Origin: Bigelowiella natans CCMP2755
Taxonomy: Eukaryota; Protista; Cercozoa
DNA: 64,000 nt
Direction: 5' to 3'
Assembly (NCBI GenBank): GCA_000320545.1
Contig: ADNK01003452.1
Location: 1-64,000, forward strand
Below the pieces are notes generated by a model, which was not told the DNA's origin, did no database searches, and worked only from the letters and a program-made list of their open reading frames with translations. Positions 2,320 to 63,360 of this stretch are shown here, in pieces (the stretch's first letter is position 1; each line of letters starts with the position of its first letter). A program made the position numbers and the translations under genes.

Positions 2320-3300
2320 CCGTCCTGATGAAACACTTGTTTTTTTTTCTTTCTTCATGCTAGCATGGCCCAACTAGCCAACTGCTAGATTGACATGCAC
2401 ATGCATCGCTAGATCGATTTTCGATTCCGTGACAAACAATCATCCCTGTTGCAAATTGCTGCAGCTTGCTCGACTCAGTGCAAGACCTTTTCGGCTGAAA
2501 GTCTCAATTGTTCTCGTGTTTTTTCACTTGCGCGTGTCATTGTTTCCAGCTGAAGGACAACTTCACTCAGCAGCAGCCGCCTCATTCTGGCATTGCGTGG
2601 CGTGCAAACTCCAGAACTGCTTGCACGCACGGTGCACCAACTGGTCTAGCGGTCTGTCTAGCTAGCAGCCCAGTGCGCATGCAAAACACTAGCGCAGCAT
2701 TCACTGGATGGCAAGTGAGAGCACTGCGTGTCAACGACCACGTGTGAACGTCACTGCGTCACGCACCACTCGTTTGCTAGTTTGGACAATGTGTGCCCGC
2801 GCGCGCATGCTGTCGCGCAGCCAGCGGAAAACCTGGACCAATCTAGCTAGCTACGTGTAACTCACGTGCGTGTTGCTGCATGCTAGCATGTGTTTGTGCG
2901 CTGGTTGCACTGACTAGCTGAGAATGCAAGACTAGCAAACCCAGAGCACAAGAGACGCACAGACAAGTCGCGCGATTTGGTGACACAACACAGCACATTG
3001 TTGTAGTTGCATGCACTAGATGAAGCGCATGTGTGCGTACATGAACAAGGGCAGGTAAATGCATACATGCATCATAGACATCCATCACGCATGCGCATGG
3101 CGCAACAAATCTAGAAATCACAACCGCTGCCACCTTGATTTTGGAAGGGAAACGTCTATGAGTACCGCACAATGTGATTCTAGCAACTTAGTCGTTTAGC
3201 ATTGCAAATGCAAAATAAATAGCACTCTGGATACATTCTAGCACTTTTTTGCTTATTGTTCTTGATAAATGCAATACATGCTACAATGAGCAGCTTGCAA
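2320..3300. other. TpA-depleted / CTAG-rich island 1 (intergenic)
   Basis: Manual count for 2341-3000: 16 TpA, 14 of them within CTAG. No TpA in 2412-2645. TGCA/CATG are abundant and CpG is retained. Confidence 0.85.
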
Positions 3301-3377
3301 ATAGTAACGTACACACGCGCGTGAGCACGGCAAGATGGATGTGTATATAGGATTTAAAGTCATCCCTTGCGTCCGCA

Positions 3378-4519
3378 TCAACCCTTTCTGTCACTACTGG
3401 CGACAACCCCTTTTTCCTTCTTGCTATCGACGCCATCGTTGCCTTTCGAGTCATGTTTTTCTTCTTCTTTGTCGCTCTTCCTCACAGATGCTAAACCAGC
3501 TTCATTGGCCCTGATAGATAGTGCGATTAATCATGAGCGGAAAGGCGGAGATGGCGCGGTGCGAAATGCTGACCAAAACGAAGGAGAACAGAAATATTGT
3601 GCGTTTCGTGTGTTGTCTCGAGAGGCAAAGATGAGCAGGATAGAATCAAATGCTGTACAGTCAGAAACAATAGCAGAGAGGGATCTTCTTTGTTTGCGCA
3701 ACCGCTGCAAGACTGCCCTGTGGTAATTCAATCGTACAGGAAGGCTATAGGCGTTTGGCAGAGCGCCGCCCCTTAGAAACGTCTGTTTTCATGATATTTA
3801 TTGCTATGAATCCCAATCGTTGGTGGTGGTGCCAAGTACCAATGCAAGCCCTTGATTAAGATTGCGTTGTCGCACTGGCGGAAGTAGAAGTAAACACCCC
3901 CGATTCCACTCAATATCTGTTGTTATTGATCGTGTGCATTATATAAAGACGACGTTACTACAACGACTACGAACAGCAACTCTCTCTTTCTCTCTCGCTC
4001 TCGCTTTCCTTCTCTCTCACGTATTAGATTGCGTGTCGGAGAAGGAAAAGGAAGAAAAGTTATACGCGATTTGTCGATTCACTGGATGCATTACAATGGC
4101 GAGAATGGCGTCAACAACGGCCCTTTGAAACATCGATACTTGAGGCCTGTACGAGTATGCGTATGAGATGCATATATTGGCATGTACTTGCACATTCACC
4201 TTATTTGCATTCGAGATTACCGCATCACGTGCAATATATGACTCGCACGTTCCAAAGTGCACGGCTACTACTACTTACTACTGGCACATGCAAACGTCGA
4301 TTTGATTTGGGTTATGCAGGAGCTTACCATCGTTGCGTCGCATCGGAGAGAAGTGCCAGCACTACTTGCACGCTTAGCAGCACTGGGAAGAGGGACTCAT
4401 AGAATGAGACCGATGTCGCAACTGAAGATACGGGACAAAATGTATCAATAATCATCGCTTTATAACACAATAGGATATGATTAACATCATCATGTAATTT
4501 GATACTTGATTTCCCCTGG

Positions 4520-4565
<46 letters not shown>

Positions 4566-4795
4566 CTACTACCAACCAAAAACGTGCGAAAAGAAAACAC
4601 GGCTAACGATAATATGCACAACGCCTTTAACCCCGAGTACCGTGTTTGAAATCCCCATAGGCCTGAGCAAAATGCAGAGGCAGAAAGGAAAGACGGAGCA
4701 AGAGCGAAATGAATTATAATATAATCTACATAATGACGGGTATACATGAGCATAATCGTGCGCACAGACGCACACACGCACGCACACAAGCACAC

Positions 4796-4847
<52 letters not shown>

Positions 4848-5686
4848 CAAAACAAACGACATATTTTCTACATTCATTCAGATTCTCTCATTCTCGCCAT
4901 CGGAAAGTCTCGCTATCGCTGCTTATCGTCGTCATCGTGGTTATCCGTGTACCTTCATTGCAGCATTGAATTCATGCACGCCTTCGATCTCTGCAGCAAC
5001 AACAGTCAGATGTCACCACAACAACGCAGACGATGCACTGGCAGCAAATACGCATCGAACAACCATCGTAAAACAGAGGAAAAGGTCTCCATCAAAATCG
5101 TCGTCGCGAAGAGATCGATATCGGCATCATAGAGAAGGCAATCTCGTCGCTATAGTTTTCTCCAGTGTGCAGTTACACCGCATCAAACCACCATCCATGC
5201 ATCGAATTCCAAAACAAAGAGCGTCGTCTCACTGTGAGGTTGAGAGTCAAGACCAGTAGCCGCAATTGGGAGGGGGGGGGGGGCGAGCTGATGCTCCCAC
5301 CCAGTGCTTTAAACATCAGAAAACCAATGATGAGGGAAGTCATGGGGACTATAAATTGCACGTCACAATTGCAATACAACCCACATATCAAATAAACAAG
5401 TGTACAGCGCGCGCCCACACAGATCATACACATGCATTCGAATAGCAAAAGCAGCCCGTTCCCATTACCACCTGCACTGTGGGAAATGCAGGGATGATTT
5501 AAAAGAAAAGAAGAAGTAGTAGTATGGGCTTTTTATAAGGAGCTAGACGGTATAATCTGTGCTACATAAGAACAAACTCTTCTCCTCCTCTTCCTCCTAC
5601 CTCGATGCTTTCATGCAAAACGGATATGCCATCCAAACGATTGCAGAGAAGAGCTGAAGCACGCACGTATACACACACACACACAC

Positions 5687-5728
<42 letters not shown>

Positions 5729-5863
5729 GGGGGAGAGAGGGAAGGAGAGGTATTGGAAATGCATAAATGGAGGGGAAAGAAACGATGTCACGGTAGGAGG
5801 ATACCGTCTAAGTACCCAACCCTCCAAGTGAAGAGGGAGGTGGGGGGGATATGAAGAATTACT

Positions 5864-5915
<52 letters not shown>

Positions 5916-7138
5916 TTAGTCGAAGTAAACCAGGCTGATCAGCAAGAGCGTGATGACAGTGTATATCTGAAAACAAGCACGTTTTGCACAAGGATGAGGG
6001 GGAATTATCAGAATTGCAACGAGGAGTCACATTGACAAAGTATTGCACTAAAAATACGTCGGTACAACACCTACTACTTCCATCACTACTCCTACTACTA
6101 CTACTACTACTACTACTACAACCACTACTGCCACTGCTACTACTATTTCCTCTATGAACGTTTTGCCTTGTGACGATAACAGAATGTACAGTTGATAATA
6201 CAACAATTGCATTTAATGTCGCATCAAAACACAATCTACTCTGTGGTATGATGCATGCTCAATGATCTACAAGACCTCCCCTCCCAGCACGCCTCTCGCC
6301 TCAGGAACGATGGCCCCGCACAGGAGCATGATAAGCCAGATGGTGGAGAACAGCTGAGCCATGCAGCAAGGGTTTGATGTGAGAAGGGCATTCCAATATA
6401 TATACCCACTCGCGTATACCCTTGGTCAGGTGCGCGTGCGTGTATTTTTCACACGTCTTTCGATAGATGCATCGATATTATGTGTGTGCGTGTGTGTACG
6501 TGCTTTTGTGTGTGTGCGTTTTATCAGATTTACAGGGTGTTTCTACATTCGCGTGCAAGCGAGGCTATTTAGTCGCTCGATATATCAATCATCGATGAAA
6601 GTAGATATCAAACACGCTAGTCACCGAGATGATAGAGCTCAAAACACAGCATATCCGCAACCAGTTCCCTTGGTGCCTTTGAGGGCGCAAACGGCACACG
6701 CACAATCAAACATGTTTAAAATGGACATCGTGATGAAGCGATACGCTCGCAGTAACGACGAGTGTTTTGTTTGCCAACCTGCCTGTGCGAGTGTGCGTGT
6801 ATGGTGTATGTATGTATTGTGAGGATTTAATGTTCTCATCATGCCTTCATAATGTTCCCAAAATACCACTTTGCCATTGCATATGTAGATTTAATTTGCA
6901 ACACTACTACGAGTCTCCCTTCCTCTCTGTATATCCGTTCCCCCCCCCCCCCCCCCCCCTTTTGTCCTTCATATGCACATATCCATCACTCACTGTAAAA
7001 GAGCTGCCCCCACCGGGAAGATACCTTTGGCAATGACAAAACAACGGTTAAGTACATAAATAAGTGATTATATGAATGTAGAGTAGGGAATTTATACACT
7101 CTTCATATCACAATGTACATTATATATTGAATATATAC

Positions 7139-7170
<32 letters not shown>

Positions 7171-8244
7171 CACATATCATATGGTTATCTCACCCGCTCC
7201 AGCCTCTCTTCGCGTGATGTGGATAACAGCTGCAAAAGGCCGACGAAAACAGCATAATCAGCAACATCGTCATGACGGTATTATTAGTAATCTATATCCC
7301 ACATAAACTACAATAGAAAGATCTTCCCATCTCCCCCAACCCCTACCCCCCCCCTCTCGCAAATGAAAAATTAAGCTATTTGCAGAGAAACTGTGAAAAT
7401 AACACATACATACCCACACGCACACACACACACACACTCACTCACAAAGAGAGAGAGAGAGAGAGAGGGAGAGATAGAGAGAAAGGCTATCATGATATCA
7501 CACAGCTTTAACGTGTAATAAAAAAACACATGTGCATACATACTGCATTAATATACTAAAAGATATAGTCTTAGTCATCATTGTACCCGTTGCGAACAAG
7601 CTCACAGCAAGCGCAAGAAGAACCATGTAAGGTAGGCGAATGCCAGCAACCTAAGTTAATATTCGGTTTTTAAAAACGGCAATTCGTCCTTCAAATTGCT
7701 TGGCTGAGAGCTGCCTTCCTCCACCCTTCAAAGAGCCCCAGAGGTTCATTGGGATGCTAGGAATGCTAATTCTATGCGTGTGTAGTGCTAGTTGTGTGCG
7801 GCAAACAATCATCCTATCACACCCAACCAACGCACTCTTGTACCGCTGCTGAAGCCACAAAGAAAGCTGCAAAAACAGAGAAGAAAGAAGAAATCAGGGT
7901 TTCGGATAAAGGTGGGAGGAGGGGGGGGGGGGGGAAGGGAAGGAATAAACAAGAGGGAAAAGCATAGGTCCAAGAAAAGCCTCACGGCTTTCGATGCATG
8001 CAGTGAATACCTGGCGCTATTCGCAAAAGCTGTTGCGATGGACATCTCTATCAACCGAGAGCAGGACCAAGAGAGAGGGGGGAGGGGGGGGGGGAGATAG
8101 AGCAGAAATAACAAATGATTTTTTATGGGAAGATGAAGAAGGCATGTGTGAGGACAGTTGTGCGATTGTAGCCATGGGGTCAAAGCGGGGAGGGGGTGAA
8201 GGAGAGGGGGGCGGTGGGTTAGCTGCGTGTAGCGACTCAATGTA

Positions 8245-8275
<31 letters not shown>

Positions 8276-9631
8276 CGATGGATATATGCGGCGTTGTGTA
8301 TTTTTGGCCACATCGAGTTGTGATGTACTGCGCGGCTGGTGCGTAGCAGATTATGCCTGACCTTTTTGGCTACAAAGTAGCACTTCTCCCCCTTGTACGA
8401 AGGCCTCTTGGTAGGACGAGAGGTTGGGATGGGCGTGGGGAACGCTGTCGGGGCTGCATGGATGATTATCGGTAGTAGCGTGGAAGAATGATTAGTGCAT
8501 GGATTTCTTATTGCCATATATGCGTGTGTGTGTGTGTGTGTGTGCGTGTGTGCGTTTGTATATATGGTTACGCGTGTGCCGAAGGCATGATGATAAGTAC
8601 CTTTTGTCGGGGCCTTCGTGGGCTTCTCCGTCGGTGCTGCGGGGATGATATCAAGAAGCATCAAGACAAGTGACGTACGATAATAAGGCTATTTGTCTGT
8701 TTGGTACAGTGAGGATACGAGGTATTGAAACTCTCTGTGCGCCGCTACTGTCACTACCACTACTGCTTAACTGCTACTACTACCACGATCGTACCTCTCG
8801 TTGGGTCTTTCGTCGGTGGCTTTGTGGGGGAAGGAGTAGGGTGCTGAAGGCAAAGATAACAAAGCGCAAACCGCGTCCAATTATTAATCGAAGTAGAGTT
8901 ATATCTTATATTTGTGTAACACGAGCATCTTTGCCCTTCCCCCCCCTCCCCCTCCCCCTCCCCCCTCCTTTCCCCATCCTACACAAAACATTTCCCTTTC
9001 GCACCTACCTTGGTGGGAGCGTGCGTTGGCCAGTCTTTACCTGAGATGAGAAATATCATTGTTTTCTTCATTTGTGGCGGCGCAGGGCATCTTTTTGTGC
9101 CGTATATTCCTTCACCCACTGCAGCTATTAACCGAATCAACAACAGGCTGGTAATCGCACTTTGCTAGCTGTACAACGCACACTGGATTTACACTAATCG
9201 ACGTTCGGGGCAGGGTATTAGCAACATCGATGCTCGAGCTGCAGTTCCGAAAGAGAATTTGGTGATAAATATACTGTATTGTGTGTTGATGTGTGTGAGC
9301 AGTAGTTTGTGCTTTTTTCGAGACGCTGGACGCTATGATCAAACTCTTTAGTGTAGATATGAGATGTTTGGGAATTGGAGAGGGTATTACACACTGCAGC
9401 AGCGTGCGTTAAGTCCAAGGATCTTTATATATCACACACATCCATATCACCATCATTGTCCCATTTACCATCGCTTTCGTGTATCGTCATCATCATCATC
9501 ATCATTTATCATCATTTATCAAAGTCAATGGCCCCTTCTGTCGGCGTCTATAGTAAGAGCAGGTAACATCACACGCAAAGAACGCCACTCCATTGCATTT
9601 CTGCTCTACACGCTTGTGAATGGGAGGCAGA

Positions 9632-9678
<47 letters not shown>

Positions 9679-10142
9679 GAGGAAGTTCTCAACAACGATG
9701 AGTTGATGCAGGTGGCAATCGCCACTGCTCATCACGCCTGGACAACGCAATGAATCGTTGTTCGGTATACAACTACACGAAATGCCCAACCACCTTCTCC
9801 AGTTTGCACAGAGGTAGGAAACCTGAATCAGTAACCGCCATAAAGCGAATCGTCACATGGGCATTTATTACATATGATATTTATAATCCAATCGTCATTA
9901 TAGTCATCTCCGCCACTGAACATAAAGCAATTCCGGAACGTACCGGTGGCGCGCAGCAGTATCTGCAGGCAAACCCTGCGATGCAGTCCCGTCCACTCCC
10001 TTGAGCTGAGTGTTCAATGATACGATGATCACCACGGGAAAGGAGGGGGGGCGGGGGGGGGGGAGGGGGGAATGGGGTGCATCCAGCTTTCTCTCCATAT
10101 GATAATGGCTAATTCGCTACGTTGCAGAGATGTGATGATTGT

Positions 10143-10222
<80 letters not shown>

Positions 10223-11195
10223 TATGTATGTATGGATTATGAAATGATCATGTTAGTGGTTCGTTTGGGATTACAATTGACTGCTTGTCCAATGTGCGCA
10301 CACGAAAGGTCATGATAGGAACCTTCAGTAACACAAATATCAACAGAGAATAAGTTTCACATAAAGGCAGCATGACGAATGGTCGAAATATGGTAATGAT
10401 CAATCGTATCTTCAATACTTAGACACTGGGGAATGGTTGTGCGTGCATGTATGAATCGTATATCATCCGTGTCGTCGTTGCCGAATGATGATGTTGTAAG
10501 ATGTGTTGTAAGATGGTCAACTTTGTCGAGCGATAGGATCCCCCGGCCAGTGCCATCCTGTTGTATATATATGAGTACTTTATTATCTTGTGAGTGCATC
10601 GGAAAATGAAGGTTCAATAGGTTCAGACCCTACATCAGATTTTATCGTATTTAAACTACTTCTTCTAAGGTTACAGCTATGAATGTAAGCGTGTGTGAAT
10701 GTGTGTGTGTGTGCGTGTGTGTGTGCGTGCGTGTTTTGCGAACGCACGGCAGCAATCATTGCCCCCTGTGGCGCAATCTGGAGAGAAGTTTGCCGGTGGA
10801 GGGCCAGTGTGTACGGGTAGCCATGTTGGCGGGGCCGTCTGTTTCGTAGTATTTAATAGAAAAGGACATAATAAGCGTGATGATACGCACGCACAGATAT
10901 GAACGTATACGCACCACCCCAATTCGAAACAATACGGCTATGCTGTTTCTCAGAAGAAAACAACAACCTTTTTTTCCTTGGCGAGTACCAGTTCATCGCC
11001 CGTTACGTTTGCGACAGAAGAGAAACCAAGAGGCTCAGACTCATTGGAAAGCAGCTCTCGGGGAGGAGCATTAAGTCGAAACGATATCAATAGAATAATG
11101 AGTCCCCCCACCGTCAAACCAAGAGCAATGCCGTTCCAACTTGCCCCCTCACGCGATCGCCGTGTACGGCAGGGGATGTGAATGCTTCCATACAT
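3378..11195 (-). CDS. Uncharacterized multi-pass membrane protein with Cys-rich and PT-repeat (mucin-like) region, many exons
   Basis: Exons include an N-terminal TM (GIALGLTVGGLIILLISF), Cys-rich segments (DCATGGNDCC; RDCIAGFACRYCCAPP) and PT stalks (APTEKPTKAPTK; APTAFPTPIPTSRPTKRPS). Several hydrophobic exons follow (LPYMVLLALAVSLFAT, LFSTIWLIMLLCGAIV, LFSAIVWMAYPF, VPMTSLIIGFLMF, LKALCILSLAVFSF), then a charged last exon ending at TGA 3378-3380. Boundaries are approximate. Confidence 0.6.
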
Positions 11196-11383
11196 TCTAT
11201 GTGCTCCTCCGTCAGTAGAGAGAAAAGGGGGGACGGGCAGTTCCGGCGAGCGAACGTTTCGAATCTCTTTGTTTTCCACGAGAGTTTAGCTATCGCTACG
11301 GAGAAATCGCCTGGATTCTCGAAAATGATAAAATCCAGCGCAAATCCACGACGATTTTTAAAGCTCCGACAAGTATTTTTCAG

Positions 11384-13017: not shown

Positions 13018-13062
<45 letters not shown>

Positions 13063-13156: not shown

Positions 13157-13212
<56 letters not shown>

Positions 13213-18799: not shown

Positions 18800-20300
18800 A
18801 CTACTTGATGACGCAAGCTAAGTAGCTAGGTAGCCCGCTGGTATAATGATGGAATTGGCCGCGCATGAATATGTGATGTCTTCATATACATGCTGGTTGT
18901 TGTCACATTGATACGATCAGCTACGATGCGACGCTAACTAACGCAAACCCTAACAATGGCGCAGTGTTCTGTTCGATAAGGTGTTGTTTTGACGGCGCTA
19001 GGAGTAAGCTAGCTAGCTGCGACGTACATTGCATCATGCATTTACACAATAGCTGCTAGCATGCTATTATTTTGTAGCTAAAAGATGTATAGAAGCATCG
19101 ATCTACGTCGTACTAGCTGCGCCTTGCTAGCCTGGTTAAGCTAGCAAGGCTAGCTAGCTAAAAGGACACAATGCACTAGCTACTAACTAGCTAGCTAGCT
19201 AGAGGCAGCACATCTAGACATGCAAGAGCTAGAAGTCAACTGCCAGCAATGATAGCACAGTCAACATGCTAGCATGCAGTGCAATGACCACATGCTAGCA
19301 TGTCAGATCGACACAGCGCATGCATGCATGTCCATCATTGTTCCACTACTAGCTAGCCGCCAGACTGTAGCTGTCTTGCAAAGCATGTGCAATGTGCTAG
19401 AATGAGCCATTCTAGCATTCCTCAGCTTCATTGCGACTGTCACAGTGCACAACTAGACAGCTAACGCCGGACGCACAGCAGTCTAGCAGTGTATTCACAT
19501 GCATGCCTAGCTAGATGCTAGCTAGCATGCCAACGAACATGTTTCGACCACGCAAGCTAGCAAGGTCAGAAGGCTTTGCTAGTTCAGTAAATTGAGGTTT
19601 GCAAAACTGTTGTTCCAGAAGCCTGCGCTAGCTCGCTAGCCACAGCAGATGTCTACTTGCTAGCTAGCTGTGTGCATCGCATGCATGACGACAAGCACGT
19701 CTCATTGCCGTGCATGCGCACGGTGCACGGCAATGACTGTGAACGTCGATTGCATGAACGCCCGCGTCGAACAATGAGAAAAAGTTAGTGAATGTGCACT
19801 TGCAATTTTGCGCTGCATTAGTCATTTGTTTTGTTGCGTGTGCATGATCTAGTTGTTGCTGGCACGGCAGGTTCATCGTGCGTTGCACACAGCGTGCATG
19901 TCTGGATGTGAATCATCAATCACCCATCACTAGATCTGCAGATCATTGCATGCTGCGAGCGAGTGCTTGACAGAGTGCATGCAACGCACGCTAGGACGGC
20001 CTCTATCTGTGCGTGATTAAACACCTTCATGCACCTCATTTATGCAAGCCTGTTTAGCTGTGCAATGACGCACAACACACAAATAACTGTGACACTGTGA
20101 TAAAACGAAGTCGACTAACACGTGATGAGAAGGAACCACGAACTACTGCGCGAAATGCACGACATTCCAGACCGAAACAACATGCATTTGATTGCATGAA
20201 ACACACAACTGCTACATCGATCATAGTGGAAACCAAAAAGATTCAACGTTAGCGTTGCAGCCGCTGCATTGCATAGCTACACAAGGATGACCATTGAACA
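18800..20300. other. TpA-depleted / CTAG-rich island 2 (between convergent genes)
   Basis: About 28 CTAG in 19141-19680, many as GCTAGCTAGC runs. Non-CTAG TpA is rare in 19200-20000. Confidence 0.85.
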
Positions 20301-20559
20301 AATTTAGTTGATCAATTACATCCGTCTTGTCACTACACAAAACAATTGTAACCTTCATTATAAACTAGAAGGCGGCCTCATGATTGCCGTAAAAAGAACA
20401 AACGGAACTTATACGACGCAGCTTGTTGTCCATATCAACATCCTCAAAGTCCACATACATGTAGCGTGCGCGCACGTACTTATAGGATTTCTCAACACAT
20501 TGAGTCTATGAGCATTCAATTCAATGAAACGAAGTCTTCATCTTACAGTTGATTTGTTC

Positions 20560-37535: not shown

Positions 37536-38583
37536 ATGGCAGCCGAACGAAAACGGGGTCTCACCCAACAAGAAATCGATAAAATGAGAGCTGAGAAAAC
37601 AGCTGAACTGATGAAGCAGGTTATTTTGATTAATCCTACCGAGAAAATGCTTCAATTGGTGGTTGGGAGGAAGCTTGGGAACATTGTAGTAGCAGTAGTA
37701 GTTGCTACTCTGATGTCGCCTGATAGCCAACTGCCGTGATCATCAGGCTGATTTAAGATCTCGAAAGGCTGAAGTTACTGTGAAAGTAATTATTACGATT
37801 TGTGCTACTGCCCACGATGTGAATGGAGCAGTAACAATAGAGCTGACTATTGATAATAATACACATGTTAGATATCGCTCGCACATGTAGGTATCTGTAT
37901 TTGTATTGCTTCTTATCTTGTCCATTCTCAACACACGCCAGAAGGCAAAACAATAGCATTGAAAGATAGAAACATATATGCTGCTCTCACTGATGGATTA
38001 CTAATTCAGAGTCGATACGCATCTTATGTGATCGGAGAACTTGATGATAACGCCATAGTACTCTTTGGTTTCTAATTCCTCTTAACTGATTCAAATACCT
38101 ATTCAAATATTTGTAACGTACCAACAAGAATAAGGGAGAGAAATGGGGCAATCCATTGGACAAAATTTTTACCTACAAATGTTTATCTATTCGAGTATAT
38201 TCATTTCAATATGGTTTTGCACGTTTTGTAGTAGCCTACATTGTTGTCTTTTACATCATCAGCTGCTGAATCACAACCTCAGTCGTAATTGTCTTTTACA
38301 TGATCAGCTGCTGAATCACAACCTCAGTCGTAGTTTTGTCCATTATTCAGTGTGTAGTACAAGTGCCGTTGAGCATCAAACCAGGAATGAGCTTCTTAGT
38401 GAGGTGACTTGCTTCGATCATTGTCAAATAAACTTACGAACACACACTACGTTAAAGCACAACACGATGCTGCTGCTGACTATGGAAGCATGTTAACAAT
38501 GACATTCATACGCTCTCATCTACTACCTCTATCATCGTCGTCGTCATTGTCACCACCCAACAATACTTTCCCTACAATTATTG

Positions 38584-52419: not shown

Positions 52420-53572
52420 TGCCATGCATGCCACTGTCGTGCACACTATGTGCATCGTGTCATGTTGAAAACCTAAACGTGCGGTCATTGTCTAGCAGAT
52501 GAGGGTAGACAAAATGCTTCATCTTTTATCACACTCCCATGTCTACTTCGAACATCCATCTTCCTCATGTCTCCGTGGTGGAAAAAGTGACAACAGTTTG
52601 AGCCCCCATGTGAGAATGCACAACTCGGTCAAACCCGGTGACACTTGTCTGCAGCGCAAAACTAGAAAAGGCGAGTTGTGCGCGTGCGCGCAGCGTTACT
52701 AATTGATGAATGTGATCACTTATTAACACATCTGCAGTTTGGCCGAGCGTCAAAATGCAATTTTTGACCGAGAAACAACCATCTGCAACAACGTGTCATT
52801 TTCGAAGGCCAAACCGCTGTTTTTGCGACAACGTGAGAACTTTGGCAAGAATTGCAAGCAATGTGCAGCGCTGCAGCAAGCAGTGTTTTGAACACGCAAG
52901 CGTGTGCGCACACGCCAACTGCGTGCACACGAAAATTCCCAGCTGCGTGCGAACACACCTTGCTTTCTCACTGCTGCGCGCTGAAGCTTCAAATCGCTTT
53001 CAAAAGCTCTCGCTTGCTCAAACACAAAGTTCACACTGGCTTACAGGTTTGACCGAGCTGTGTGCATGTGTCAGGTTGAGTGCGCTGCTATGTGCCACGA
53101 CCGTGCACGCGCGCAAGGTGGTGCTGTGTGCAATTGGTGTGGATTTTGCTTGTTGTTGGGATTCGACACATCGATTGCGTTGTGCGCCACAAAACCAGCA
53201 AAGCAGGATGATGGACAAGCAACGTGTTGCATCACATTGCTGCGTCCGTTGCTAGGTTGTCAGGCAGCACGATGCCATCAACACAGGTGCCGCGTGCGCT
53301 GCGTGCAAGAACCTGAGAGTGTGTGCGCTCACTCACCACGTGCCAGCACGCTGCATGCATGCCTCGATCAGAGTGTGCACCAATCTAGCTAGCTAGCAAT
53401 CTCAGTGTTGCACGTGACACAGCATGCCAGCATGCTGGCATGCTTGCACAGCTTTGATCACACGATGCATCACGTGGGCTTGCTTGGTGAGCTTGTCCCT
53501 CCGCTGCCTGCATTGTCCACACCTGCAACCAGCTAGCTGAACCCACCACCACACCAGCATGCGATGCCAGCA
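52420..53572. other. TpA-depleted island 4, left part
   Basis: 52741-53572 (832 bp): 7 TpA, 5 of them in CTAG. CpG is abundant. Confidence 0.85.
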
Positions 53573-53898
53573 TGTAGCGCGTACCACTACGCGGGCACAA
53601 GTCACGTGCGACAACAAAGGGGTTGTCGCGGATATAGAATATAGATAACGTAGATATTAATACAGCATAGGCACGTGGGTTCCGGCGGGACTCATGGCAG
53701 CACACCGGAAGTGTGCTGCCCCACGTGCGGCGGCATTCGCGAAAGCTTCGCGAATGATTACGCAGTGCACGATTTAATAAAAATATAATCTTTAATAAAA
53801 ATAAACACAACTCTTCAAAAGGAAGCAAACGTGCCTTTCCCCCCCCCTGCCTACTTGTGCACGTAGCGCCTCGGCCTGTGAACACCTTACGCGCAACA
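53573..53898 (+). repeat. 5' LTR (326 bp)
   Basis: TGTAGCGCGTA...TACGCGCAACA (10/11 terminal inverted repeat), AATAAA signals at ~53775-53805, identical to the 3' LTR by eye. Confidence 0.97.
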
Positions 53899-53903
53899 AC
53901 CTT

Positions 53904-53920
53904 TGGCTTCCACACACGGG
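53904..53920 (+). promoter_or_regulatory. Primer-binding site (tRNA 3'-end complement)
   Basis: TGGCTTCCACACACGGG begins with TGG (complement of CCA), 5 nt after the 5' LTR. The tRNA identity is not established; it would end ...GUGGAAG-CCA, resembling Glu/Asp-type acceptor ends. Confidence 0.7.
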
Positions 53921-53937
53921 AAACGATTTGACTAACA

Positions 53938-54543
53938 ATGTCACAGCAGCTAGAAGAACAGCAGGACTTTGGCTCGCAGGCCGTGCAAGGGCACGAGCAG
54001 AAACAGGAAAGGAAGGGCGATACGGACGCTAAGGAAGGAGGAGGAACACCTCCACAGGCACCGCCGGGACCAGCACCCGGGATTAAGAAAGCAGATGCAG
54101 CAGCAGAGGCACTGGAGAACTTCTACGAGGCGGACGACGAGGACGTGGCCGCCGAAAGCAAGAAGGTCGTAATGGCATTACGAGCCTTGCGACCCAGGGC
54201 GAGCAACTACGCCAAACTGAAAGTATCGATAGAATACAAGTATCAGACACATGATGTTTGGGCAGCTATCATGCAGGACATCATGGATTACGAAGCAGAC
54301 TTACCTCCAGAGTGGGCAGCTTTGTTTAGGAACGACGGGGGTCTGGGCGCCTCGCGGGGGACGACCCAGAGCACCGTCAAGCAGCAGCAGCCGGTACAGC
54401 GGAACACCCAGTTCATGTCTGTTAAAACAGCACCGGTTATGATAACGAAATACAACGGGAAAAGAGGTGAGGCAAGGAGGTGGTGGAAGAACGCTAGGAG
54501 TATACTCTGCGACTTTACCACGTTGCGGATACTGCTCACGTAA
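53938..54543 (+). CDS. gag: Gag N-terminal ORF (201 aa), capsid apparently truncated
   Basis: ATG lies 18 nt after the PBS. The ORF ends shortly after the capsid-start-like motif ITKYNGKRGEARRWW. Confidence 0.75.
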   Translation: MSQQLEEQQDFGSQAVQGHEQKQERKGDTDAKEGGGTPPQAPPGPAPGIKKADAAAEALENFYEADDEDVAAESKKVVMALRALRPRASNYAKLKVSIEYKYQTHDVWAAIMQDIMDYEADLPPEWAALFRNDGGLGASRGTTQSTVKQQQPVQRNTQFMSVKTAPVMITKYNGKRGEARRWWKNARSILCDFTTLRILLT

Positions 54544-56422
54544 AGGGAAACACACCGCTAAAGACTGCAGAGACAGGAAAGAAGGACGACCCAGGATGAC
54601 GATCAGGCAGCTCAACGAACACTACGAGAAGTTAAAGAGAAAGAAAGGCAGAGGACAAGGATATAACAACAGCAAATGGCAAGGCAGCAACAACGGGAAG
54701 AACAATAAATATAAGAACAAAAAGCAGAACAGTATCAATGCTATACAGCAGCAGATAAACGGAATATTAGATCACCTTAAGCAGGCGCCGACGAAGACAG
54801 CAGTACCAGCAACGCAGGACCAAGACAAGCCCATGACCCTAGACGACATAAAGAACTTAGGAGTATGCAACATTAATGACGAAGACGCTAACAGGACTAT
54901 CAAAGTTGCTATGACCAAGGTTAAAGTTAAAGACAGCTACGGAGACTACAAGAAACTACCTGCCCTTTGGGATAGTGGCAGCATGCCGAAGTCCTTCATA
55001 AGCCTAAGCACAGTAAGAAGGTTAGGACTATTGGATCAAGTGACTAAGAAAGAACGTAAATATGCTCAAGCAGACGGAAGCTCTTCCATGAAGACCGTCG
55101 GTGAGCTAATGCTAAAGCTACAGATACCTGGCAGCGACGCGGAGACCCAAATCAAGACCCGAGTAGCCATGACTTTATCCATGGAACTACTCCTCGGACA
55201 GGATGCCCTAGAAAAATTAGGGGGGATCATATCATTCTACAATCACAAGATATACTTTGCTAAGTTGCCAAAGAAGTCAGGCAGGACCATCAGCCAGAAC
55301 ATGATACGGCTTGACGAGTGGACCTCTGAGTCAAGCGTTAATGCGTTAGAGTTTATGGACCTAGCGGACAACAAGCTACCTACACCTACCGAGCTACGGA
55401 AGAAGAACCCCGGCAAGACCATCCGACAGATAACGGAGCTACTGGACAAGACCCCCCCAGCTGATGATTGGGATATCGACAAAGGCAAAAAGTACATTAA
55501 TAAAATATTAAACGAGAAGTACTCTGACATCACCAAGCCGACGACGAAGCCCTCCAGCAAGCTTACCCCAGTAAAGATCGAGCTAAAGAAGGGATACGAA
55601 GAGTGCATCATCAATGACCCAAAACATAGGCGACCGGAAGCGGACTGGGAAAAGATAGAGTGGCAGATCAATGAATGGGCAAAGGAAGGGAAGATAGAGC
55701 CAAGCAACTCACCATGGAACGTGAGACATGTGCTAGCTAAGAAACCTACTTACCCTTTCTTCCGCCTGGCGCACAACTTCATCCGCCACAACCGAGTAAT
55801 AAAGAGGATCCAGACACCTACACCAAGGATAGATGACGTTATTGAACACGTCATAGGATACAAATACTACTCTTCCCTAGATAAAAATGAATCATACATG
55901 CAGACACCCATCCACAAAACCTCCCGCCCCATTACCGCGTTCTCCAGCAGGCACAGGAAGTGGCACTTCGTCGTATTCCCTTACGGCCTAAGCATATCAG
56001 GGGATGCGTTCAGTAGTCAGAACTACAGGGCATACACACATGATGGGATGGCGTCTGTGTTGTGGGTGTTTGTGTTTGTGTATGTGGATGATGACATAAT
56101 ATGTACCAACACAGTCGTCGCTCAGATCTTCCTCCTGGAAAATATATTTATTAGGTTTGCACACTTCGGTTTTACTATTAGACTGCAGAAGTGTACATTC
56201 CTAGCTACAAGAATCAAGTGGTGTGGATATTACCTGGAGCAAGGCCGCATCACCCCAAACCCCGAGAAAGTAGCAGCACTACAGCAAGCCCCTAAACCTA
56301 AGAATGCAAAGGAGTTAAAGCATTCTTGCAGACTGCAGCTTGGATACTACGTAGGTTCTCCCCTACCTACGCTAGGACTGCAGCTGCTTTTACTACTGCT
56401 TACCGGAAGGAGAACTCTGTAG
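54467..56422 (+). CDS. pol: Gag zinc knuckle + aspartic protease + reverse transcriptase
   Basis: CGYCSRKGKHTAKDC (CX2CX5HX4C), ALWDSGS...LLLGQDAL (protease), IEPSNSPWN, SLDKNESYMQ, FPYGL, YVDD, LQKCTF (RT). The frame is lost at ~56317-56320. Confidence 0.93.
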   Translation: MRQGGGGRTLGVYSATLPRCGYCSRKGKHTAKDCRDRKEGRPRMTIRQLNEHYEKLKRKKGRGQGYNNSKWQGSNNGKNNKYKNKKQNSINAIQQQINGILDHLKQAPTKTAVPATQDQDKPMTLDDIKNLGVCNINDEDANRTIKVAMTKVKVKDSYGDYKKLPALWDSGSMPKSFISLSTVRRLGLLDQVTKKERKYAQADGSSSMKTVGELMLKLQIPGSDAETQIKTRVAMTLSMELLLGQDALEKLGGIISFYNHKIYFAKLPKKSGRTISQNMIRLDEWTSESSVNALEFMDLADNKLPTPTELRKKNPGKTIRQITELLDKTPPADDWDIDKGKKYINKILNEKYSDITKPTTKPSSKLTPVKIELKKGYEECIINDPKHRRPEADWEKIEWQINEWAKEGKIEPSNSPWNVRHVLAKKPTYPFFRLAHNFIRHNRVIKRIQTPTPRIDDVIEHVIGYKYYSSLDKNESYMQTPIHKTSRPITAFSSRHRKWHFVVFPYGLSISGDAFSSQNYRAYTHDGMASVLWVFVFVYVDDDIICTNTVVAQIFLLENIFIRFAHFGFTIRLQKCTFLATRIKWCGYYLEQGRITPNPEKVAALQQAPKPKNAKELKHSCRLQLGYYVGSPLPTLGLQLLLLLLTGRRTL

Positions 56423-58389
56423 GCCTCAGCTTCGCTAAGGTGTGGGCCAAGGCTGGCCTTGATGCCCACTTCGATAACCTAATAAAGTTATGCAGCAACA
56501 CCCTATTGAATGCTAAGCTAGACACTACTAGACCAGCTACCCTATGGACAGACTGGTCTAAGCTAGGTATGGCTGCTGTACTTACCCAAGACCAGCAGAT
56601 CATACGGGTGTGGGGCAGGGCCTGCACAGCAGCTGAGGCCAAGTACAGCCCTACAAAAGGAGAGTATAAAGCCATGACTGAGGCGCAGAGGAAACTAAGA
56701 CACTACCTGCTGTCGGTGCCCAGCTTCACCTTAATGACTGACCACAAGCCCCTCCTAGGCATCGACCGCAAGCTCGAAGCGCCTAACGATGAGTATGCAG
56801 CTATGAGGGCGGACACGGAAGAGTTTAGGGACAAGAGGACAGTGGTCTACGCACCAGGAGACAAGCAGCTTGCTGACTATTTCAGCAGGCTGTTCGAAAA
56901 GAAAGTCCCTACCCAGGTCACCCCTATGGTTAACGCGATTACCTTCGAGGACGGCGACTTCCTGCCTGAGCCAGAGGAGCTCCAGCACCTTCAAGAACAC
57001 CTGGATAAATACAAACACAAGCATGAGGTACTTAGTGATAGGATATATGTATACACTAATAATGTTAGGCGTACCTACGTGCCACGGCGGACCAGGGGAG
57101 CCCTTCTCTTTACCGCCCATGGACCTGCACACGTAGGAGAAAACCATATCACTGCTCTACTCTACCATTACTACTGGCCCTACAAGCTAAAAGAGATAAG
57201 GACATACCTGCGTGGCTGCAGGTGCTCCAGCTTGAAGGCGGCAGGTGTCGCCACCAAGGAGTCCAGCAAGAGCCGTGCATCTAAGAAAATCAAAGCAAGG
57301 AACTTCTTAGATATCGTGCAAATTGATGTTTATAAGTACGATGGCTATCACTACCTTACCTTCGTTGATGTGGCCACTGGAAAGTGCTGGGTTAAAAAGA
57401 TTATCAAGGTCAACGTTGCTAAGAAGAACAAAGGCTTATATAAGCAGAGGCTTACTAACTGCTACCGTACCTGGGAGTCTGAGCTCCAGGCTATCCCTGA
57501 TGAAGTTAGCATAAACAAGATACCAAAGAAGTTACATGTGGATAATGAGACCTCTCTTCTACAGCTACCACACCCTAATATTGATGCCTCACCTGTATAC
57601 TATGCCCAGTCCAACTCCAAGGTAGAGCGACTCCACCGCACCTTGGCCAACCTAAGCAGGATAAATAGCACCACACCAGACAAGATACAAGGGTTAGTAA
57701 ACGACACCTTCACGTCTGGGGGAGGTATCAAGGATAAGGAGAGGGAAGAAGGCGACGACAACGACGACGATACCGAGAGCGAAGACGAGAAGGTCCCGTA
57801 CGATGGCCGAGTTCTAAAGGAAGGACAGTATGTTAGGGCCAAGGTAAATCTGAGATCGAGAAATAAACAAGACCCCTTCTGGGGTGGCGTTGCAAAGGTT
57901 ACCGAGAGGAAGGGGAGGAAGCAGTACTACATCTATGATGGGAACAGGGTCACCTTGCGCCACATCAGTCACCTAAAGAATTATGATATCGGTGAGAAGC
58001 TCCTAGAGGATGTTAAAGTAAACCCTACTGTGTGGGAGCGAGCCATGCCTTGTTTAGGACCCCGACCTAAGTTCGATGTGGAATATGGAAACAATAAGGT
58101 CAGGGTGAACGACGATTGGCGCATGAAGATTGTCTATCTAGGCTACCCTGGATTACGAAATATGGAGAGGGTAGCTATGAAAATAAAGGACGGAAAATAT
58201 CAGCTACTCTACCTAGCTGTTCCCGACTTACCCTTTGAGCACTGGTATAAGGTCCTGGGGGACCTTGATGCAGAGGGCTGGTATGGACACGAACCTAAGG
58301 ACGAAGGTGAGTTCTGGGTAAGCGACAAAGGAGATAAGGTTAGAGAGGAATCTATTACCTGGTGGTTGGTGAAGTTCCGAAAGCGATGA
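56326..58389 (+). CDS. pol: RT thumb/RNase H + integrase + GPY/F-like module + C-terminal MTase-like extension
   Basis: LWTDWS...YSPTKGEY...MTDHKPL...LADYFSR (RNase H); HGPAH...CRC zinc-binding motif; IDV / VDNE / KVER (DDE); KQDPFWGG...RHISHLK (GPY/F-SH3-like); about 135 additional aa before the stop. Confidence 0.93.
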   Translation: MQTAAWILRRFSPTYARTAAAFTTAYRKENSVGLSFAKVWAKAGLDAHFDNLIKLCSNTLLNAKLDTTRPATLWTDWSKLGMAAVLTQDQQIIRVWGRACTAAEAKYSPTKGEYKAMTEAQRKLRHYLLSVPSFTLMTDHKPLLGIDRKLEAPNDEYAAMRADTEEFRDKRTVVYAPGDKQLADYFSRLFEKKVPTQVTPMVNAITFEDGDFLPEPEELQHLQEHLDKYKHKHEVLSDRIYVYTNNVRRTYVPRRTRGALLFTAHGPAHVGENHITALLYHYYWPYKLKEIRTYLRGCRCSSLKAAGVATKESSKSRASKKIKARNFLDIVQIDVYKYDGYHYLTFVDVATGKCWVKKIIKVNVAKKNKGLYKQRLTNCYRTWESELQAIPDEVSINKIPKKLHVDNETSLLQLPHPNIDASPVYYAQSNSKVERLHRTLANLSRINSTTPDKIQGLVNDTFTSGGGIKDKEREEGDDNDDDTESEDEKVPYDGRVLKEGQYVRAKVNLRSRNKQDPFWGGVAKVTERKGRKQYYIYDGNRVTLRHISHLKNYDIGEKLLEDVKVNPTVWERAMPCLGPRPKFDVEYGNNKVRVNDDWRMKIVYLGYPGLRNMERVAMKIKDGKYQLLYLAVPDLPFEHWYKVLGDLDAEGWYGHEPKDEGEFWVSDKGDKVREESITWWLVKFRKR

Positions 58390-58396
58390 AGGTCTA

Positions 58397-58440
58397 AGGG
58401 AATAAGGAAGGAAGGAAGGAGCAACGTGACTTGGGGGAGG
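58397..58440 (+). promoter_or_regulatory. Polypurine tract
   Basis: GGGGGAGG (58433-58440) abuts the 3' LTR and is preceded by purine-rich AAGGGAATAAGGAAGGAAGGAAGGAG. Confidence 0.85.
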
Positions 58441-58766
58441 TGTAGCGCGTACCACTACGCGGGCACAAGTCACGTGCGACAACAAAGGGGTTGTCGCGGA
58501 TATAGAATATAGATAACGTAGATATTAATACAGCATAGGCACGTGGGTTCCGGCGGGACTCATGGCAGCACACCGGAAGTGTGCTGCCCCACGTGCGGCG
58601 GCATTCGCGAAAGCTTCGCGAATGATTACGCAGTGCACGATTTAATAAAAATATAATCTTTAATAAAAATAAACACAACTCTTCAAAAGGAAGCAAACGT
58701 GCCTTTCCCCCCCCCTGCCTACTTGTGCACGTAGCGCCTCGGCCTGTGAACACCTTACGCGCAACA
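58441..58766 (+). repeat. 3' LTR (326 bp)
   Basis: Identical to 53573-53898, including the 9-C run. Confidence 0.97.
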
Positions 58767-59270
58767 AGCACGCACACGCACGCACTGTCTAGCTGTGTCT
58801 GTGAACGACTTTGAGTGCGTGCGCATGCCAGCATGGAACGTGCCAACTCATCTGTTGTTGAAAGAACAAGTGAATGAATGAACGAACCAATTCCAATGCT
58901 TGAGTTGACAGGATCATCATCAGACGCACCAAGTCGTCGTCCATGTCCCCTGACAAAAACAACCAAAGATCGAGGGTTTGGCGTTCAAAAAATGCATCCC
59001 AATTGTTGTGTGCGTCAACGAATCGAACGAAAAAGTCGTTCACATTCATCAAACGACAGCAGTTCGCATGTGTCGTCACAGCAAATCACGTGCCTTTTCC
59101 TTCATTTTTTCAAACGTATTTTTAGCACTCTGCTGCTCTCCTCATCGCTACTCGCATGCAGGAACCCACCTCCACGTGTCATCGATCATAGCCACCTTCC
59201 ACATTTGCAATTGAAGACGACGTTGCAGCCCCTCGAAAGACACACAGAGAGCCCAGCACACTTGGATACG
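58767..59270. other. TpA-depleted island 4, right part
   Basis: 58767-59110: a single TpA, within CTAG. Confidence 0.85.
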
Positions 59271-60134
59271 TAGGACATTCCTTTCATTTTAGTGAGGAAA
59301 CGAGCAAGTCTGCAGAGCAGAAATCTGGAAAGCAGAAAGGCGTACTCGTCTTTCTTCACGGTATGGATGGTGCATTAATATTTGAATGTTGTTATCATCA
59401 TGACCGGAATGTTTTTTTACAAAACATGGCTACATAGGCAGTGGAGACAATGGTCCAAACTTTCAGAAATGGGTCTACATGGCCTCCAAAGGGAAGTAAT
59501 GTAGCCTCTAAAAACCACATCATTGTGAATCATTTCGCTTGCGTACACTTTAGTGATTTCCCTTTGGAAAGGCTGTCAAATATTCTATCCCATAAGTTTG
59601 TCACCCATAATCTTGTTGGATTAGATTTGAAAGCACGCTCGCTAACAATGGCATAGCTGTTGTGTATCCTTCTGCAAAATGTATTCCTTATACTCTCGCA
59701 GGTCAAGTTCAATGTTATACAACATTGCTCCTTATCTGTCCTGTCTTCCTCCTTTATAGCAATCAATGACATATCTGTAGATCCTTTTGCAGAATATTTT
59801 GTGTTGTGGGTTATTCCAAAATATTTTATCGTTCCTCTAATTGCAGCCGGGATGAAGATGTCAGTATGGCATGATAGGTAGTAGTAGAGTTTGCAAATAG
59901 CACGCACTAGTCTTGATAAATTGTGATGGTGGTGAACAAATGATTTCAATCATGATATCTATAGCGGTTGATTGTGTTCATCCTCATCATCGCCATCATC
60001 ACTTAGAACGGGTTTGGGACCGAAGTTTCCAGAAGATACAGAAGGCATACGCAATTCTCTAGAAAGTCTCGACAAGAACATTCTGAATCCCCTAGCAACC
60101 AAAGGTACTACTCCCCAATATACCACACGCACAC

Positions 60135-60185
<51 letters not shown>

Positions 60186-60845
60186 ATCCATATGTGTGTG
60201 TGTGTGTGTGTGTGTGTTGTCTGTTTTCTTTATCGGTACCTTACATGCTGCTAATAGAAGTAGTATTTGCTACCAACACATTCTTGGATTGCTCATTCAC
60301 CTTGTCTTTATAAGTAATTAATAACTCATATTTGAAGAATTACCGGTTGTGGTCGGTGGATTCTCACAAGGTTAGTATTATGCATATTTCAATTTTTTTT
60401 GCATCTTTCAGTAAAAGAAATCTAAGCTAAAATTGAATTCCCTACTTTGGCAATACATTCTTCTTATACCCATTTTACTATAAGGTGGTCATATGGCAAT
60501 GCACGTTGCTCTCAACGATTGTTCCAACAGCAACTATAATAGCACCGGTAGTTGTAGTAAAAAGGACAACAACAGTAGCACCAGCAGCAGCAAGTTGGAA
60601 AGCGGCAACCCTAGAAAGAATATCCAATCCTGGTATGTCTGGGGTTCTAAATAATCTACGCCACAGTGCACACATGTGATACTTAAATGGTGAGATGATG
60701 ATGATGATCAGAAGCTGCAAATGTTTTCCTACTACTTCCTAGCATTAAAGGTTGTTTCGTCATGTCATCGTACCTCCACGACGACTCAAACATCTACAAA
60801 ATCTTCTCAAACGAAAACATATTGCCAGGTCTCTCTCTCTTTATT

Positions 60846-60884
<39 letters not shown>

Positions 60885-61440
60885 TAATGGTGACTTGATG
60901 AGGCCTGCTGTAAAGGGATGGGTATCTTCTGTGGTCGATCCTTTACTACTACTACTAAATAATGTGGATAGATAATAATGTCTTTTGTGCTCGATCCTTT
61001 ACTACTACTACTAAATAATGTGGATAGATAATGTCTTCTGTGGTCGATCCTTTACTACTAAATGATGTGTATACGATACCCCCTTTGCACATTAAGACGC
61101 TACTGCTGCTACTACTGCAGCTCAAGTTGTATTGACATCATCATTGTCATCATCATCATCGTCATCATCATTATCGTCGTCTTATTACATCTCTACTGGT
61201 CTACCATACTTACACAGAAGTCAAGCTTCCACTTCTAATGACACATGGAACGGTATAACATAGAAGTGTTCGTATAATATCGATGAAGGCAAGAACGGAT
61301 TTATAGAATAAAGGAAGAGGGAGGATAATATATTTAGATCTGTGAAGCTCGTTATTTTCACGAGCACAGAAATTCTACGGAATGAAATTGAGGATTTGGT
61401 TTCTCCGCATTGTTCATTTTTGGAAATATCTAACAATTCA
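58789..61440 (-). CDS. Possible multi-exon gene of unknown function whose 3' exons enter island 4
   Basis: AG/GT-bounded segments LFRTPDIPGLDILSR, YAIVSERAFKSNPTRLWVTNLWDRIFDSLSKG, and NDFFVRFVDAHNNWDAFFERQTLDLWLFLSGDMDDDL|GT. The model is incomplete. Confidence 0.35.
60925..61072. repeat. Imperfect tandem repeat, ~53-56 bp unit x ~2.7
   Basis: TCTT(C/T)TGTG(G/C)TCGATCCTTT(ACT)nAAAT(A/G)ATGTG occurs three times head-to-tail. Confidence 0.85.
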
Positions 61441-61746
61441 GCGTGATAGGATGATTTCGAGCAAATGGGGTGAAAAAACGGCGAAGAAACTCAAGGATGT
61501 TGGGTAGTAGTAATTGCACCTCCTCTGTTTTTTATTTTGTTTATAAAAACATCGATATCGACTTTCATTGATACCTCATATAATAAAGACCCCTATGTTA
61601 TTTTTAGGTTGGACGTGCGATTTAAATTAATTGATGGTATAACCTCCATCCAACTCGTAGAATAACGAGAACAATCTTTGAAATGGGATAGCCATTTATG
61701 TAACAGTCGAAATTGTTTACCTACAAGGGAATAAAACGTTTTCTGT

Positions 61747-61790
<44 letters not shown>

Positions 61791-61919
61791 GTGTGTGTGT
61801 GTGTTCTGAACAACATCACGACATGTCATCGACGATTGTCCGATGACCGTATCTTTTCTACTCAACGTAAGAGGGCGAGGGAGAAGGAGGGAAGTGTCCA
61901 CTTTTCACATTTCTCTCGT

Positions 61920-63360
61920 GCTTCATTGTTTGGTGTTGCAGGCACGGAGCATGCTTTGTGCCCGAGTTCCCTTGATGAAGTGCTCAATTTCGTATTAGAT
62001 TCGTTCAGTATGTGATTGCTCAGCTTGTCACTCTAGCACTGCTAGACTGCAACGTGCGGACAACCAAATGCCCATCATCTTCTGCTAGTTCAGCTGGTTC
62101 AGCACGCCTAGCATCATGACTGACCGCATGTTCGCAATGGGTTCATCTGCACCTAGCATCACCAGATCATGATGGACTGCATTGCCAACACCATGATCAT
62201 GCTGGCAACCAGCATCACACATTGATTGCACGTTTTCAACTCTTTCAAGACATTGCCTTTCCCACAACGTGCTGGCATGGAAAATCAAAGCAGCGCGCAT
62301 AGCCTTCGGCACGTGTCAAACAATGATGATCTCGTGCCTGCTGGCCTGGCTAGCCAGCTAGCTGGCCACAGCAGCCACACCGCACGTTGCGTTGAATTGC
62401 GAAAGGTCGAACGTGCTGAACAAAGCTGTGAGTGCGATGTTTTTGCAATGACAATCACCAAATCAGCGCGCACACTCTGGCACTGCTGGACTGGTGCACG
62501 TCTGGCACGCACCATCAAGCTGGACCACACGACAACTTTGAGCACAAGGAAGTTTTGCCAGTTTGTGCAGACTCTCAATTGGCAAGAACTGGAGAAGGAT
62601 CGAAAACTGGAAAAGGTTGCACGCTGCGACTCCAAGTGAAGCCCCTTCTCGCGCACCACAAGCCGTTCCAGCGTTGTGTCCACCACACACCACCAGACCG
62701 CCACACTCCGTGGCACTTGGGTGTCGCAGTTTGGAGAGCACCTGCAGAGGTGTGGAGGTGCTGGCATGGCTCCAAGGCTCCTCGTTCGCGTCAGAGTGAC
62801 ACGTGGCACTCTGAAGGGGACAAATCACTGTCAACAAGACCGTTCGAAACCTTGCAATGCAGCACGTGCACCAGCGCAGCACCAGTTGCTCTTGGCTTGC
62901 ACTTTGTTCGTTCGTTCTTTTGGTCAATTGCTCACTCGCTTGGCTTTTTCCCAACTCCCAAAAAGCTCCAGGTTCAAGAAAGGTTCAACAAGGTTCGTGT
63001 CCACATTGAAGTTCCAACGGGCACTAGCATCACAACCAACTCGATGCACCTCCACTGGATTGGAAAGCGTGCTAGCGGTGCAGCATGCAGGTGAGTGAAA
63101 ACAGGTCGAGGGTCCTCCATCGCTGTGTCTGAAATCCTGTTCAAGTTGATTCAGTTGCTGCCACTTGAACGACGAAATTGAGATGATGAGGTTGGTTGTG
63201 GCAGCAGACATTTGATGCACACCACTGGGCAACCGACAACTCTAAGACATTTCAGACTCAAAGACAATCTTTGTGTGCTATGCAAGGCAACTTCGTCACT
63301 GTCAAGTCGCATGTCTGAAATGCAATGTCAAAATTCATGGAATCTCATGCACATCACATC
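61920..63360. other. TpA-depleted island 5 (overlaps exons)
   Basis: 62041-63240: 9 TpA, 8 of them in CTAG. Zero TpA in 62361-63024 (664 bp). Confidence 0.9.
62513..63163 (-). pseudogene. Two in-phase exons of a host gene or pseudogene with no Tyr and excess Cys/His
   Basis: Exon ~63163-62936 (…FGSWEKAKR|GTGAG), intron 62935-62811 (…TTCAG), exon 62810-62513 (SATCHSDANEEPW…VVQLD|GTGCGT). The gene probably extends past the right edge of the window. Confidence 0.55.

Follow-up and report, generated by a model that had tools for sequence, protein, structure and literature searches.

TpA-erased intergenic islands and a young Ty3/gypsy retrotransposon in a 64-kb stretch of the Bigelowiella natans genome

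TpA-erased islands in the window

The 64,000-nt stretch of Bigelowiella natans CCMP2755 studied here (contig ADNK01003452.1, assembly GCA_000320545.1), which we call the window, carries discrete intergenic islands largely stripped of the dinucleotide TpA. One of them is interrupted by a young Ty3/gypsy long terminal repeat (LTR) retrotransposon, and at the protein level the retrotransposon in the window shows 100% identity to JGI Bigna1 models of Bigelowiella natans. Sliding windows along the stretch showed that the observed/expected ratio of TpA drops from ~0.9 to 0–0.3 at discrete places. The islands, to which no strand applies, are the following (the CTAG scars are small insertions treated in the next section):

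2320 to 3150, no strand: TpA-erased island 1, unique sequence, with seven CTAG scars within 4-bp duplications
19200 to 20000, no strand: partly erased island 2, the weak one, rich in CTAG scars
52560 to 53572, no strand: TpA-erased island 3, left half, resuming at 58767 past the LTR element
58767 to 59260, no strand: TpA-erased island 3, right half
62020 to 63360, no strand: TpA-erased island 4, saturated, unique sequence

Island 1 contains 23 TA where 50 are expected (7 outside CTAG), island 2 contains 33 against 50 (10 outside CTAG), and the two halves of island 3 contain 12 against 56 (52560–53572) and 5 against 33 (58768–59260). An earlier note on this DNA, made from the letters alone, had counted 9 TA against about 70 expected at 62041–63240, in island 4; our count gave 9 against 67 expected by composition, with 8 in CTAG and 1 outside, an exception of CTAG to the TpA loss that had been overlooked in that reading. 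The longest stretch without a non-CTAG TA, 943 bp, lies in the same island (62300–63243), and the five longest such runs of the window (943, 535, 486, 361 and 318 bp) are all in islands, compared with a maximum of 167 bp outside. The five islands of 1–1.7 kb proposed earlier are thus real, but they number four and measure 0.5–1.5 kb, since the segments at 52.6–53.6 and 58.8–59.3 kb, taken as separate, form a single island split by the Ty3/gypsy element.

Compared with the microsatellite-masked background, all TA-containing tetramers except CTAG are 4- to >50-fold down in the islands, while TGCA, CATG and GCAC are ~3-fold up and CTAG is ~6-fold up. CpG is retained (452 against 334 expected), in line with the abundance of TpG/CpA words and the CpG retention described before, and the (TA)n repeats said to be missing are indeed absent. 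ApT is mildly depleted (0.6x), as is AA, and the GC content is 48–57%. Words containing CC or GG (CCC, AGG, GGA) are 1.5–2.5-fold depleted, possibly reflecting the absence of simple repeats.

The island calls cover 8%, most of the non-coding DNA of the window being non-island, and TA is near normal at the supposed divergent promoters (15.2–15.9, 37.0–37.5 and 50.4–50.9 kb), where the earlier note had also seen no island. By eye, the genes beside the islands may have convergent polarity. Transposable elements are present in island 3 and CTAG scars in all islands. The view that the islands share no repeat family holds for islands 1 and 4, which are unique, but not for the part of island 3 that belongs to a repeat family. 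A decayed gene had been suspected under the islands; searches against Pfam and the genome itself found none in any of them, and this idea was dropped. No protein family match was obtained for island 4. Short tandem duplications were also seen in the window (45-bp units at 38244–38332 and 56-bp units at 60925–61060).

Direction of the change and survival of CTAG

Two repeat families bear on the direction of the change:

20120 to 20330, forward strand: copy of repeat family B, ~210 bp, at an island edge, used to polarize the change
52617 to 53070, forward strand: repeat family A, a ~450-bp non-autonomous terminal-inverted-repeat element with ends CAC...GTG

Family B has 992 first-look candidates, and its substitution spectrum was drawn from 30 copies. 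An A preceded by T, written T[A], has changed to G at 28 of 350 sites (8.0%) compared with 50 of 2313 in the other contexts, where the rates after A, C or G are 2.1, 2.2 and 2.3%, A[A] being no faster than the others. No transversion was found at T[A]. The T[A]>G change is rarer when a G follows (4/103 against 24/247 otherwise), and C>T (5.8%, against 2.9% for A>G overall) is not suppressed.

Family A, with ~40 matches and apparently a 2-bp target duplication, would be CACTA/CMC-like; a TA target duplication was considered and dropped, the element ends being constant (CA../..TG). All 10 copies examined lie within islands or at an island edge, and their majority sequence has no TA left. Five alignment columns show TG in some copies and CA in others, with residual TA as a third state, and C>T at CpG reaches only 4.6%. 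Since CpG is kept and the third state in these columns is TA, their ancestor was TA and not CG, which rules out CpG deamination as the source of the TG/CA pairs. Copies of both families also carry many insertions of 3–8 bp and micro-duplications in addition to the CTAG scars, which suggests that breaks in these spacers have often been repaired.

The same change can be read in proteins. Tyr is missing altogether from Bigna1/70820 (670 amino acids) and 67480 (1243 amino acids; 1,913 residues together), two older relatives of the retrotransposon in B. natans, in which the positions held by Tyr in the window element are mostly His, Cys or Arg. Replacement by His or Cys is what TpA loss should give, because it turns TAY codons into CAY or TGY. 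Related elements from other samples keep 2–5% Tyr. Bigna1/70820 belongs to a cluster depleted in TpA that is named in Fig. S11 of a 2026 preprint on this species (Mettrop et al., 10.64898/2026.01.13.699255).

In that study, two integrated viral regions were found to mutate ~1000-fold faster than the rest in clonal mutation-accumulation lines; of the 231 de novo mutations in these regions 230 were A:T→G:C, nearly all at TpA, and 1-kb windows depleted in TpA and rich in CpA+TpG were reported genome-wide (10.64898/2026.01.13.699255). The conversion of TpA to TpG/CpA in our material is localized, affects both strands and has flank preferences, and the islands are new instances of this already reported process. 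Accordingly, the earlier proposal of a localized A:T→G:C mutator turning TA into TG/CA is borne out by the polarized repeat copies, the Tyr-free proteins and the published mutation-accumulation lines; the directional excess it looked for in homologue alignments is there (T[A]>G 8.0% against ~2%). Its statement that no mechanism of this kind had been described is overtaken by the preprint. An assembly or basecalling artefact was rejected, since the polarized copies, the proteins without Tyr and the de novo mutations in the published lines all speak against it. What we add to the published work is a quantified insertion bias of the retrotransposon and a sign of live transposition in the published data. 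The preprint's main text mentions neither CTAG nor footprints nor LTR elements, and where a supplementary legend brings up the 5.7-kb LTR element, it does so only because the element disturbs mapping (10.64898/2026.01.13.699255).

CTAG persists in the islands from two sources, the scars and a slower rate. Scar statistics were collected on 229 kb of genome DNA, in which 112 of 256 island CTAGs (44%) sit exactly between two copies of one 4-mer, compared with 1.5% for other tetramers. The duplication is sharply 4 bp long, giving scars of 8 bp that are visible as 8-bp insertions in repeat copies, and these supply fresh CTAG. The same 4-bp duplication surrounds CTGG and CCAG in 13% of island cases, so about one quarter of the scars have since mutated, and CTAG is slowed rather than immune; protection of the motif alone is an incomplete account. 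As to the rate, mutation of TA is slower next to C or G, by ~2–3-fold for a 3′ G. Residual densities, island over outside, are 0.06–0.08 for ATAT, ATAC and ATAA, 0.25–0.30 for CTAA and CTAC, and 1.2 for non-scar CTAG; these ratios are partly circular for the non-CTAG words, on which the islands were called, while the ranking among those words is not. In Table S2 of the preprint, 20 of 206 TpA hits fall in the TAG/CTA class (a hand count, without correction for opportunity; 10.64898/2026.01.13.699255).

By analogy with Tc1, the scars would be excision footprints of a DNA transposon, a cut-and-paste element that ends in CT...AG and duplicates 4 bp of its target. The 229 kb yielded no element whose ends match, a literature search returned no paper on such a CTAG footprint, and none of the 21 published de novo indels is a CTAG scar (10.64898/2026.01.13.699255). 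The commonest duplicated 4-mer at the scars is CATG (31 of ~180 in the 229 kb). Palindromic target preference is typical of DDE transposases. At 18800–19200, left of island 2, scars starting at ~18826 are dense and accompanied by (CTAG)n runs in DNA of normal TA content, which shows that scars and erasure overlap yet are separable; a triple CTAG near there fits a scar formed at a CTAG target. Elsewhere in the genome DNA (L056:1526–2475), a TTAA-flanked inverted-repeat element of ~950 bp is organised around family B ends and is possibly the full-length family B.

The young Ty3/gypsy element and its integrase domain

The element that splits island 3 and the domain at the end of its integrase are placed as follows:

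53573 to 58766, forward strand: young Ty3/gypsy LTR retrotransposon with identical 326-bp LTRs (53573–53898 and 58441–58766) and target duplication AGCA
57967 to 58386, forward strand: Dam-fold pseudo-methyltransferase domain of 140 residues at the integrase C-terminus, with GYPG instead of NPP(Y/F)

The element has the TG...CA LTRs, the short target duplication and the protease–reverse transcriptase–RNase H–integrase order of Ty3/gypsy elements. It has a normal content of TA, with 16.4 TA outside CTAG per 250 bp. Compared with other copies, the one in the window lacks ~520 bp near 54519 and has its pol split over two frames, many of the others having a single 1659-aa frame. The copies are nearly identical, with 7 substitutions in 33 kb and no change at 1,847 TA sites.

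Insertion sites were studied on 30 copies, the best BLAST hits among ~150, a sample biased to flanks ending in GCA, which was controlled for. Non-CTAG TA rises from a mean of 2.6 per 250 bp beside the LTR to 16 at 1.25–1.5 kb, and 23 of the 30 copies have at most 3 non-CTAG TA in the 250-bp flank, compared with 5–13% of the matched background (P ~6e-16 at 12%). In this sample, the young element lies preferentially in TpA-erased domains. As the flanks are erased and the copies intact, erasure preceded insertion, and since the copies have stayed unmutated, either the islands are at present quiet or insertion was extremely recent. For the same reason, hypermutation spreading outward from the young LTR is unlikely.

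One published de novo insertion, at scaffold_8:334281, is identical to the last 11 bases of the window LTR (53888–53898; Table S2 of 10.64898/2026.01.13.699255), and several others of the 21 published indels have ACA as their last bases or TG as their first. The match suggests that these indels are truncated calls of new LTR insertions and that the element is active. If so, unselected targets could be read from the published reads, and the question of targeting could be put to a direct test.

The integrase ends in a domain whose likeness to Dam was revealed by its fold only, sequence-level tests of Dam homology being negative or marginal: one family member reaches PF05869 (Dam), at no better than E 0.03, and PF05869 has no match in this genome. 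The domain has 54 relatives, and those long enough to check end gypsy pol proteins; relatives were seen in marine metagenomes and in assembly GCA_013332835.1. A structure model built from 35 sequences (predicted local distance difference test score 94.5) had phage N6-adenine methyltransferases as its best Foldseek matches (E 4e-6 to 5e-4) and, in the atlas, matched the Dam cluster and reverse-transcriptase-linked clusters with template modelling scores of 0.62–0.71 (0.64 for the Dam cluster). Against the PDB, matches were weak (PCIF1 and KsgA/Erm, Z 7.0 and below). In most of the 35 aligned members, GYPG stands at the position of the catalytic NPP(Y/F), and the domain is apparently disabled as a Dam methyltransferase. 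Standing where chromoviruses have their chromodomain, it may act as an integration tether. A bolder idea, which we hold to be doubtful, is that the hypermutated domains bear a modified base or structure at TpA that the dead Dam domain reads, so that the element inserts into erased safe havens; were this true, the domain would offer a probe, already at hand, for the mark that underlies a genome defence directed at adenine.

Origin of the islands and comparison with known systems

We consider it likely that the TpA-directed hypermutation of B. natans left the islands as fossil targets close to saturation, and that an adenine-editing activity was probably recruited episodically to silenced, transposon-rich spacers. 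A host activity, putatively an adenine deaminase or an equivalent modified-adenine route, would be brought in episodes to chromatin carrying foreign or transposable DNA and would turn the A of TpA into G on either strand, yielding TG or CA. Its targets in the window would be intergenic spacers used as transposon landing sites. The young gypsy element arrived after erasure and, in the sample of 30, lies preferentially in the erased domains. Weighing against this account are the absence of detectable repeat or foreign homology in islands 1 and 4, for which foreign DNA is thus only a presumed target, the intact state of the young element, the most obvious invader present, and the strand symmetry of the sequence data, which are compatible with deamination of A or with a T-centred lesion. 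Repeat identity alone is not the trigger, because the element has stayed unmutated in spite of its high copy number, and two of the islands are single-copy.

Three mechanisms had been put forward in the earlier note, of which adenine deamination, with a presumed enzyme, now leads. DNA polymerase eta prefers TA over AA, and error-prone patch repair of this type at WA motifs would suit islands full of small insertions and hence often repaired; the spectrum, however, has no A[A] excess (2.1% against 2.2–2.3%) and no T[A] transversions, AA is only mildly depleted, and the published events are almost exclusively at TpA (10.64898/2026.01.13.699255), so that this explanation is very improbable and largely refuted. 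Hotspots of GC-biased gene conversion, or repeats that are TA-poor by nature, might be suggested by the 48–57% GC of the islands and by the TA-poor copies of family A, yet gene conversion has no dinucleotide specificity and C>T in family B is unsuppressed (5.8% against 2.9% for A>G), the split TG/CA columns and Tyr-free proteins make the TA loss derived, and the clonal lines show the change as mutation (10.64898/2026.01.13.699255); we reject this as the least credible of all. An ADAT2-like DNA deaminase was proposed by the preprint authors (10.64898/2026.01.13.699255). A route through a lesion on thymine (for example oxidised T or 5-hydroxymethyluracil at TpA), or through a methylated adenine at TpA that is later deaminated or mis-repaired, is unlikely but deserves more weight than polymerase eta or gene conversion: strand-symmetric data cannot assign the mutated base, and a modified adenine is hinted at by an integrase that prefers these domains and has an adenine-methyltransferase fold. 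Opposing it, eukaryotic AMT1-type N6-methyladenine sits at ApT (10.64898/2026.05.21.726589), a dinucleotide here depleted only to 0.6x, and the genome has no PF05869 match.

The insertion bias has a competing explanation of its own, in which the pseudo-Dam domain plays no part and the enrichment reflects either survival after selection or a broad preference for spacers that are silent or convergent. The genome is compact, and scars and several transposable element families also accumulate in these spacers. On the other hand, the depletion peaks sharply where the element inserted (from 2.6 TA per 250 bp beside the LTR to 16 at 1.25–1.5 kb), the near-identical copies have left little time for selection, and most of the non-coding DNA of the window is non-island, island calls covering 8%. 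We lean somewhat against this explanation while regarding it as a serious possibility.

Whichever route is taken, the core process belongs to a literature months old, without a proven enzyme or targeting rule. Our data show that its reach extended beyond integrated viruses to retrotransposons and to small intergenic sinks for transposons, and the context preferences found here are a constraint that any candidate enzyme must reproduce.

Several known systems resemble parts of what we describe. In footprints of the Tc1/mariner type, two terminal bases from either end are enclosed by the target duplication; the scars likewise have a fixed 4-base core within an exact target duplication, but with a 4-bp duplication, a CTAG core and no element with matching ends in the 229 kb. 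RIP, the repeat-induced point mutation of fungi, is premeiotic, requires sequence duplication and changes C to T, producing TpA. Like the islands, it is a localized, dinucleotide-specific transition hypermutation associated with repeats, but it runs in the opposite direction: TpA is lost and CpA gained in the islands, which lack the C→T change of RIP. Nor does its duplication trigger apply, as ~150 identical elements are unmutated while the single-copy islands 1 and 4 are erased.

LTR elements carrying Dam have been described, with no mention of Bigelowiella or Rhizaria (Fernandez-Moreno et al., 10.64898/2026.05.21.726589). These DAM-LTR retrotransposons, and the Dam domains of DIRS elements, resemble the B. 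natans element in joining a Ty3/gypsy pol to a phage/DIRS Dam-fold domain. The B. natans domain differs in its conserved GYPG for NPP(Y/F) and is invisible to PF05869, and its element is associated with TpA-erased DNA, whereas DAM-LTR copies are methylated and transcribed. With chromoviruses, whose integration is guided by a chromodomain, the element shares an accessory domain at the integrase C-terminus and biased insertion, but the domain has a methyltransferase fold and its role as a tether is hypothetical. Closest is the published TpA hypermutation of B. natans (10.64898/2026.01.13.699255), in the same species and with the same TpA→TpG/CpA change on both strands; it was measured in a giant-virus and a virophage insertion, and windows of at least 3 kb were clustered, whereas here it has saturated intergenic spacers of 0.5–1.5 kb.

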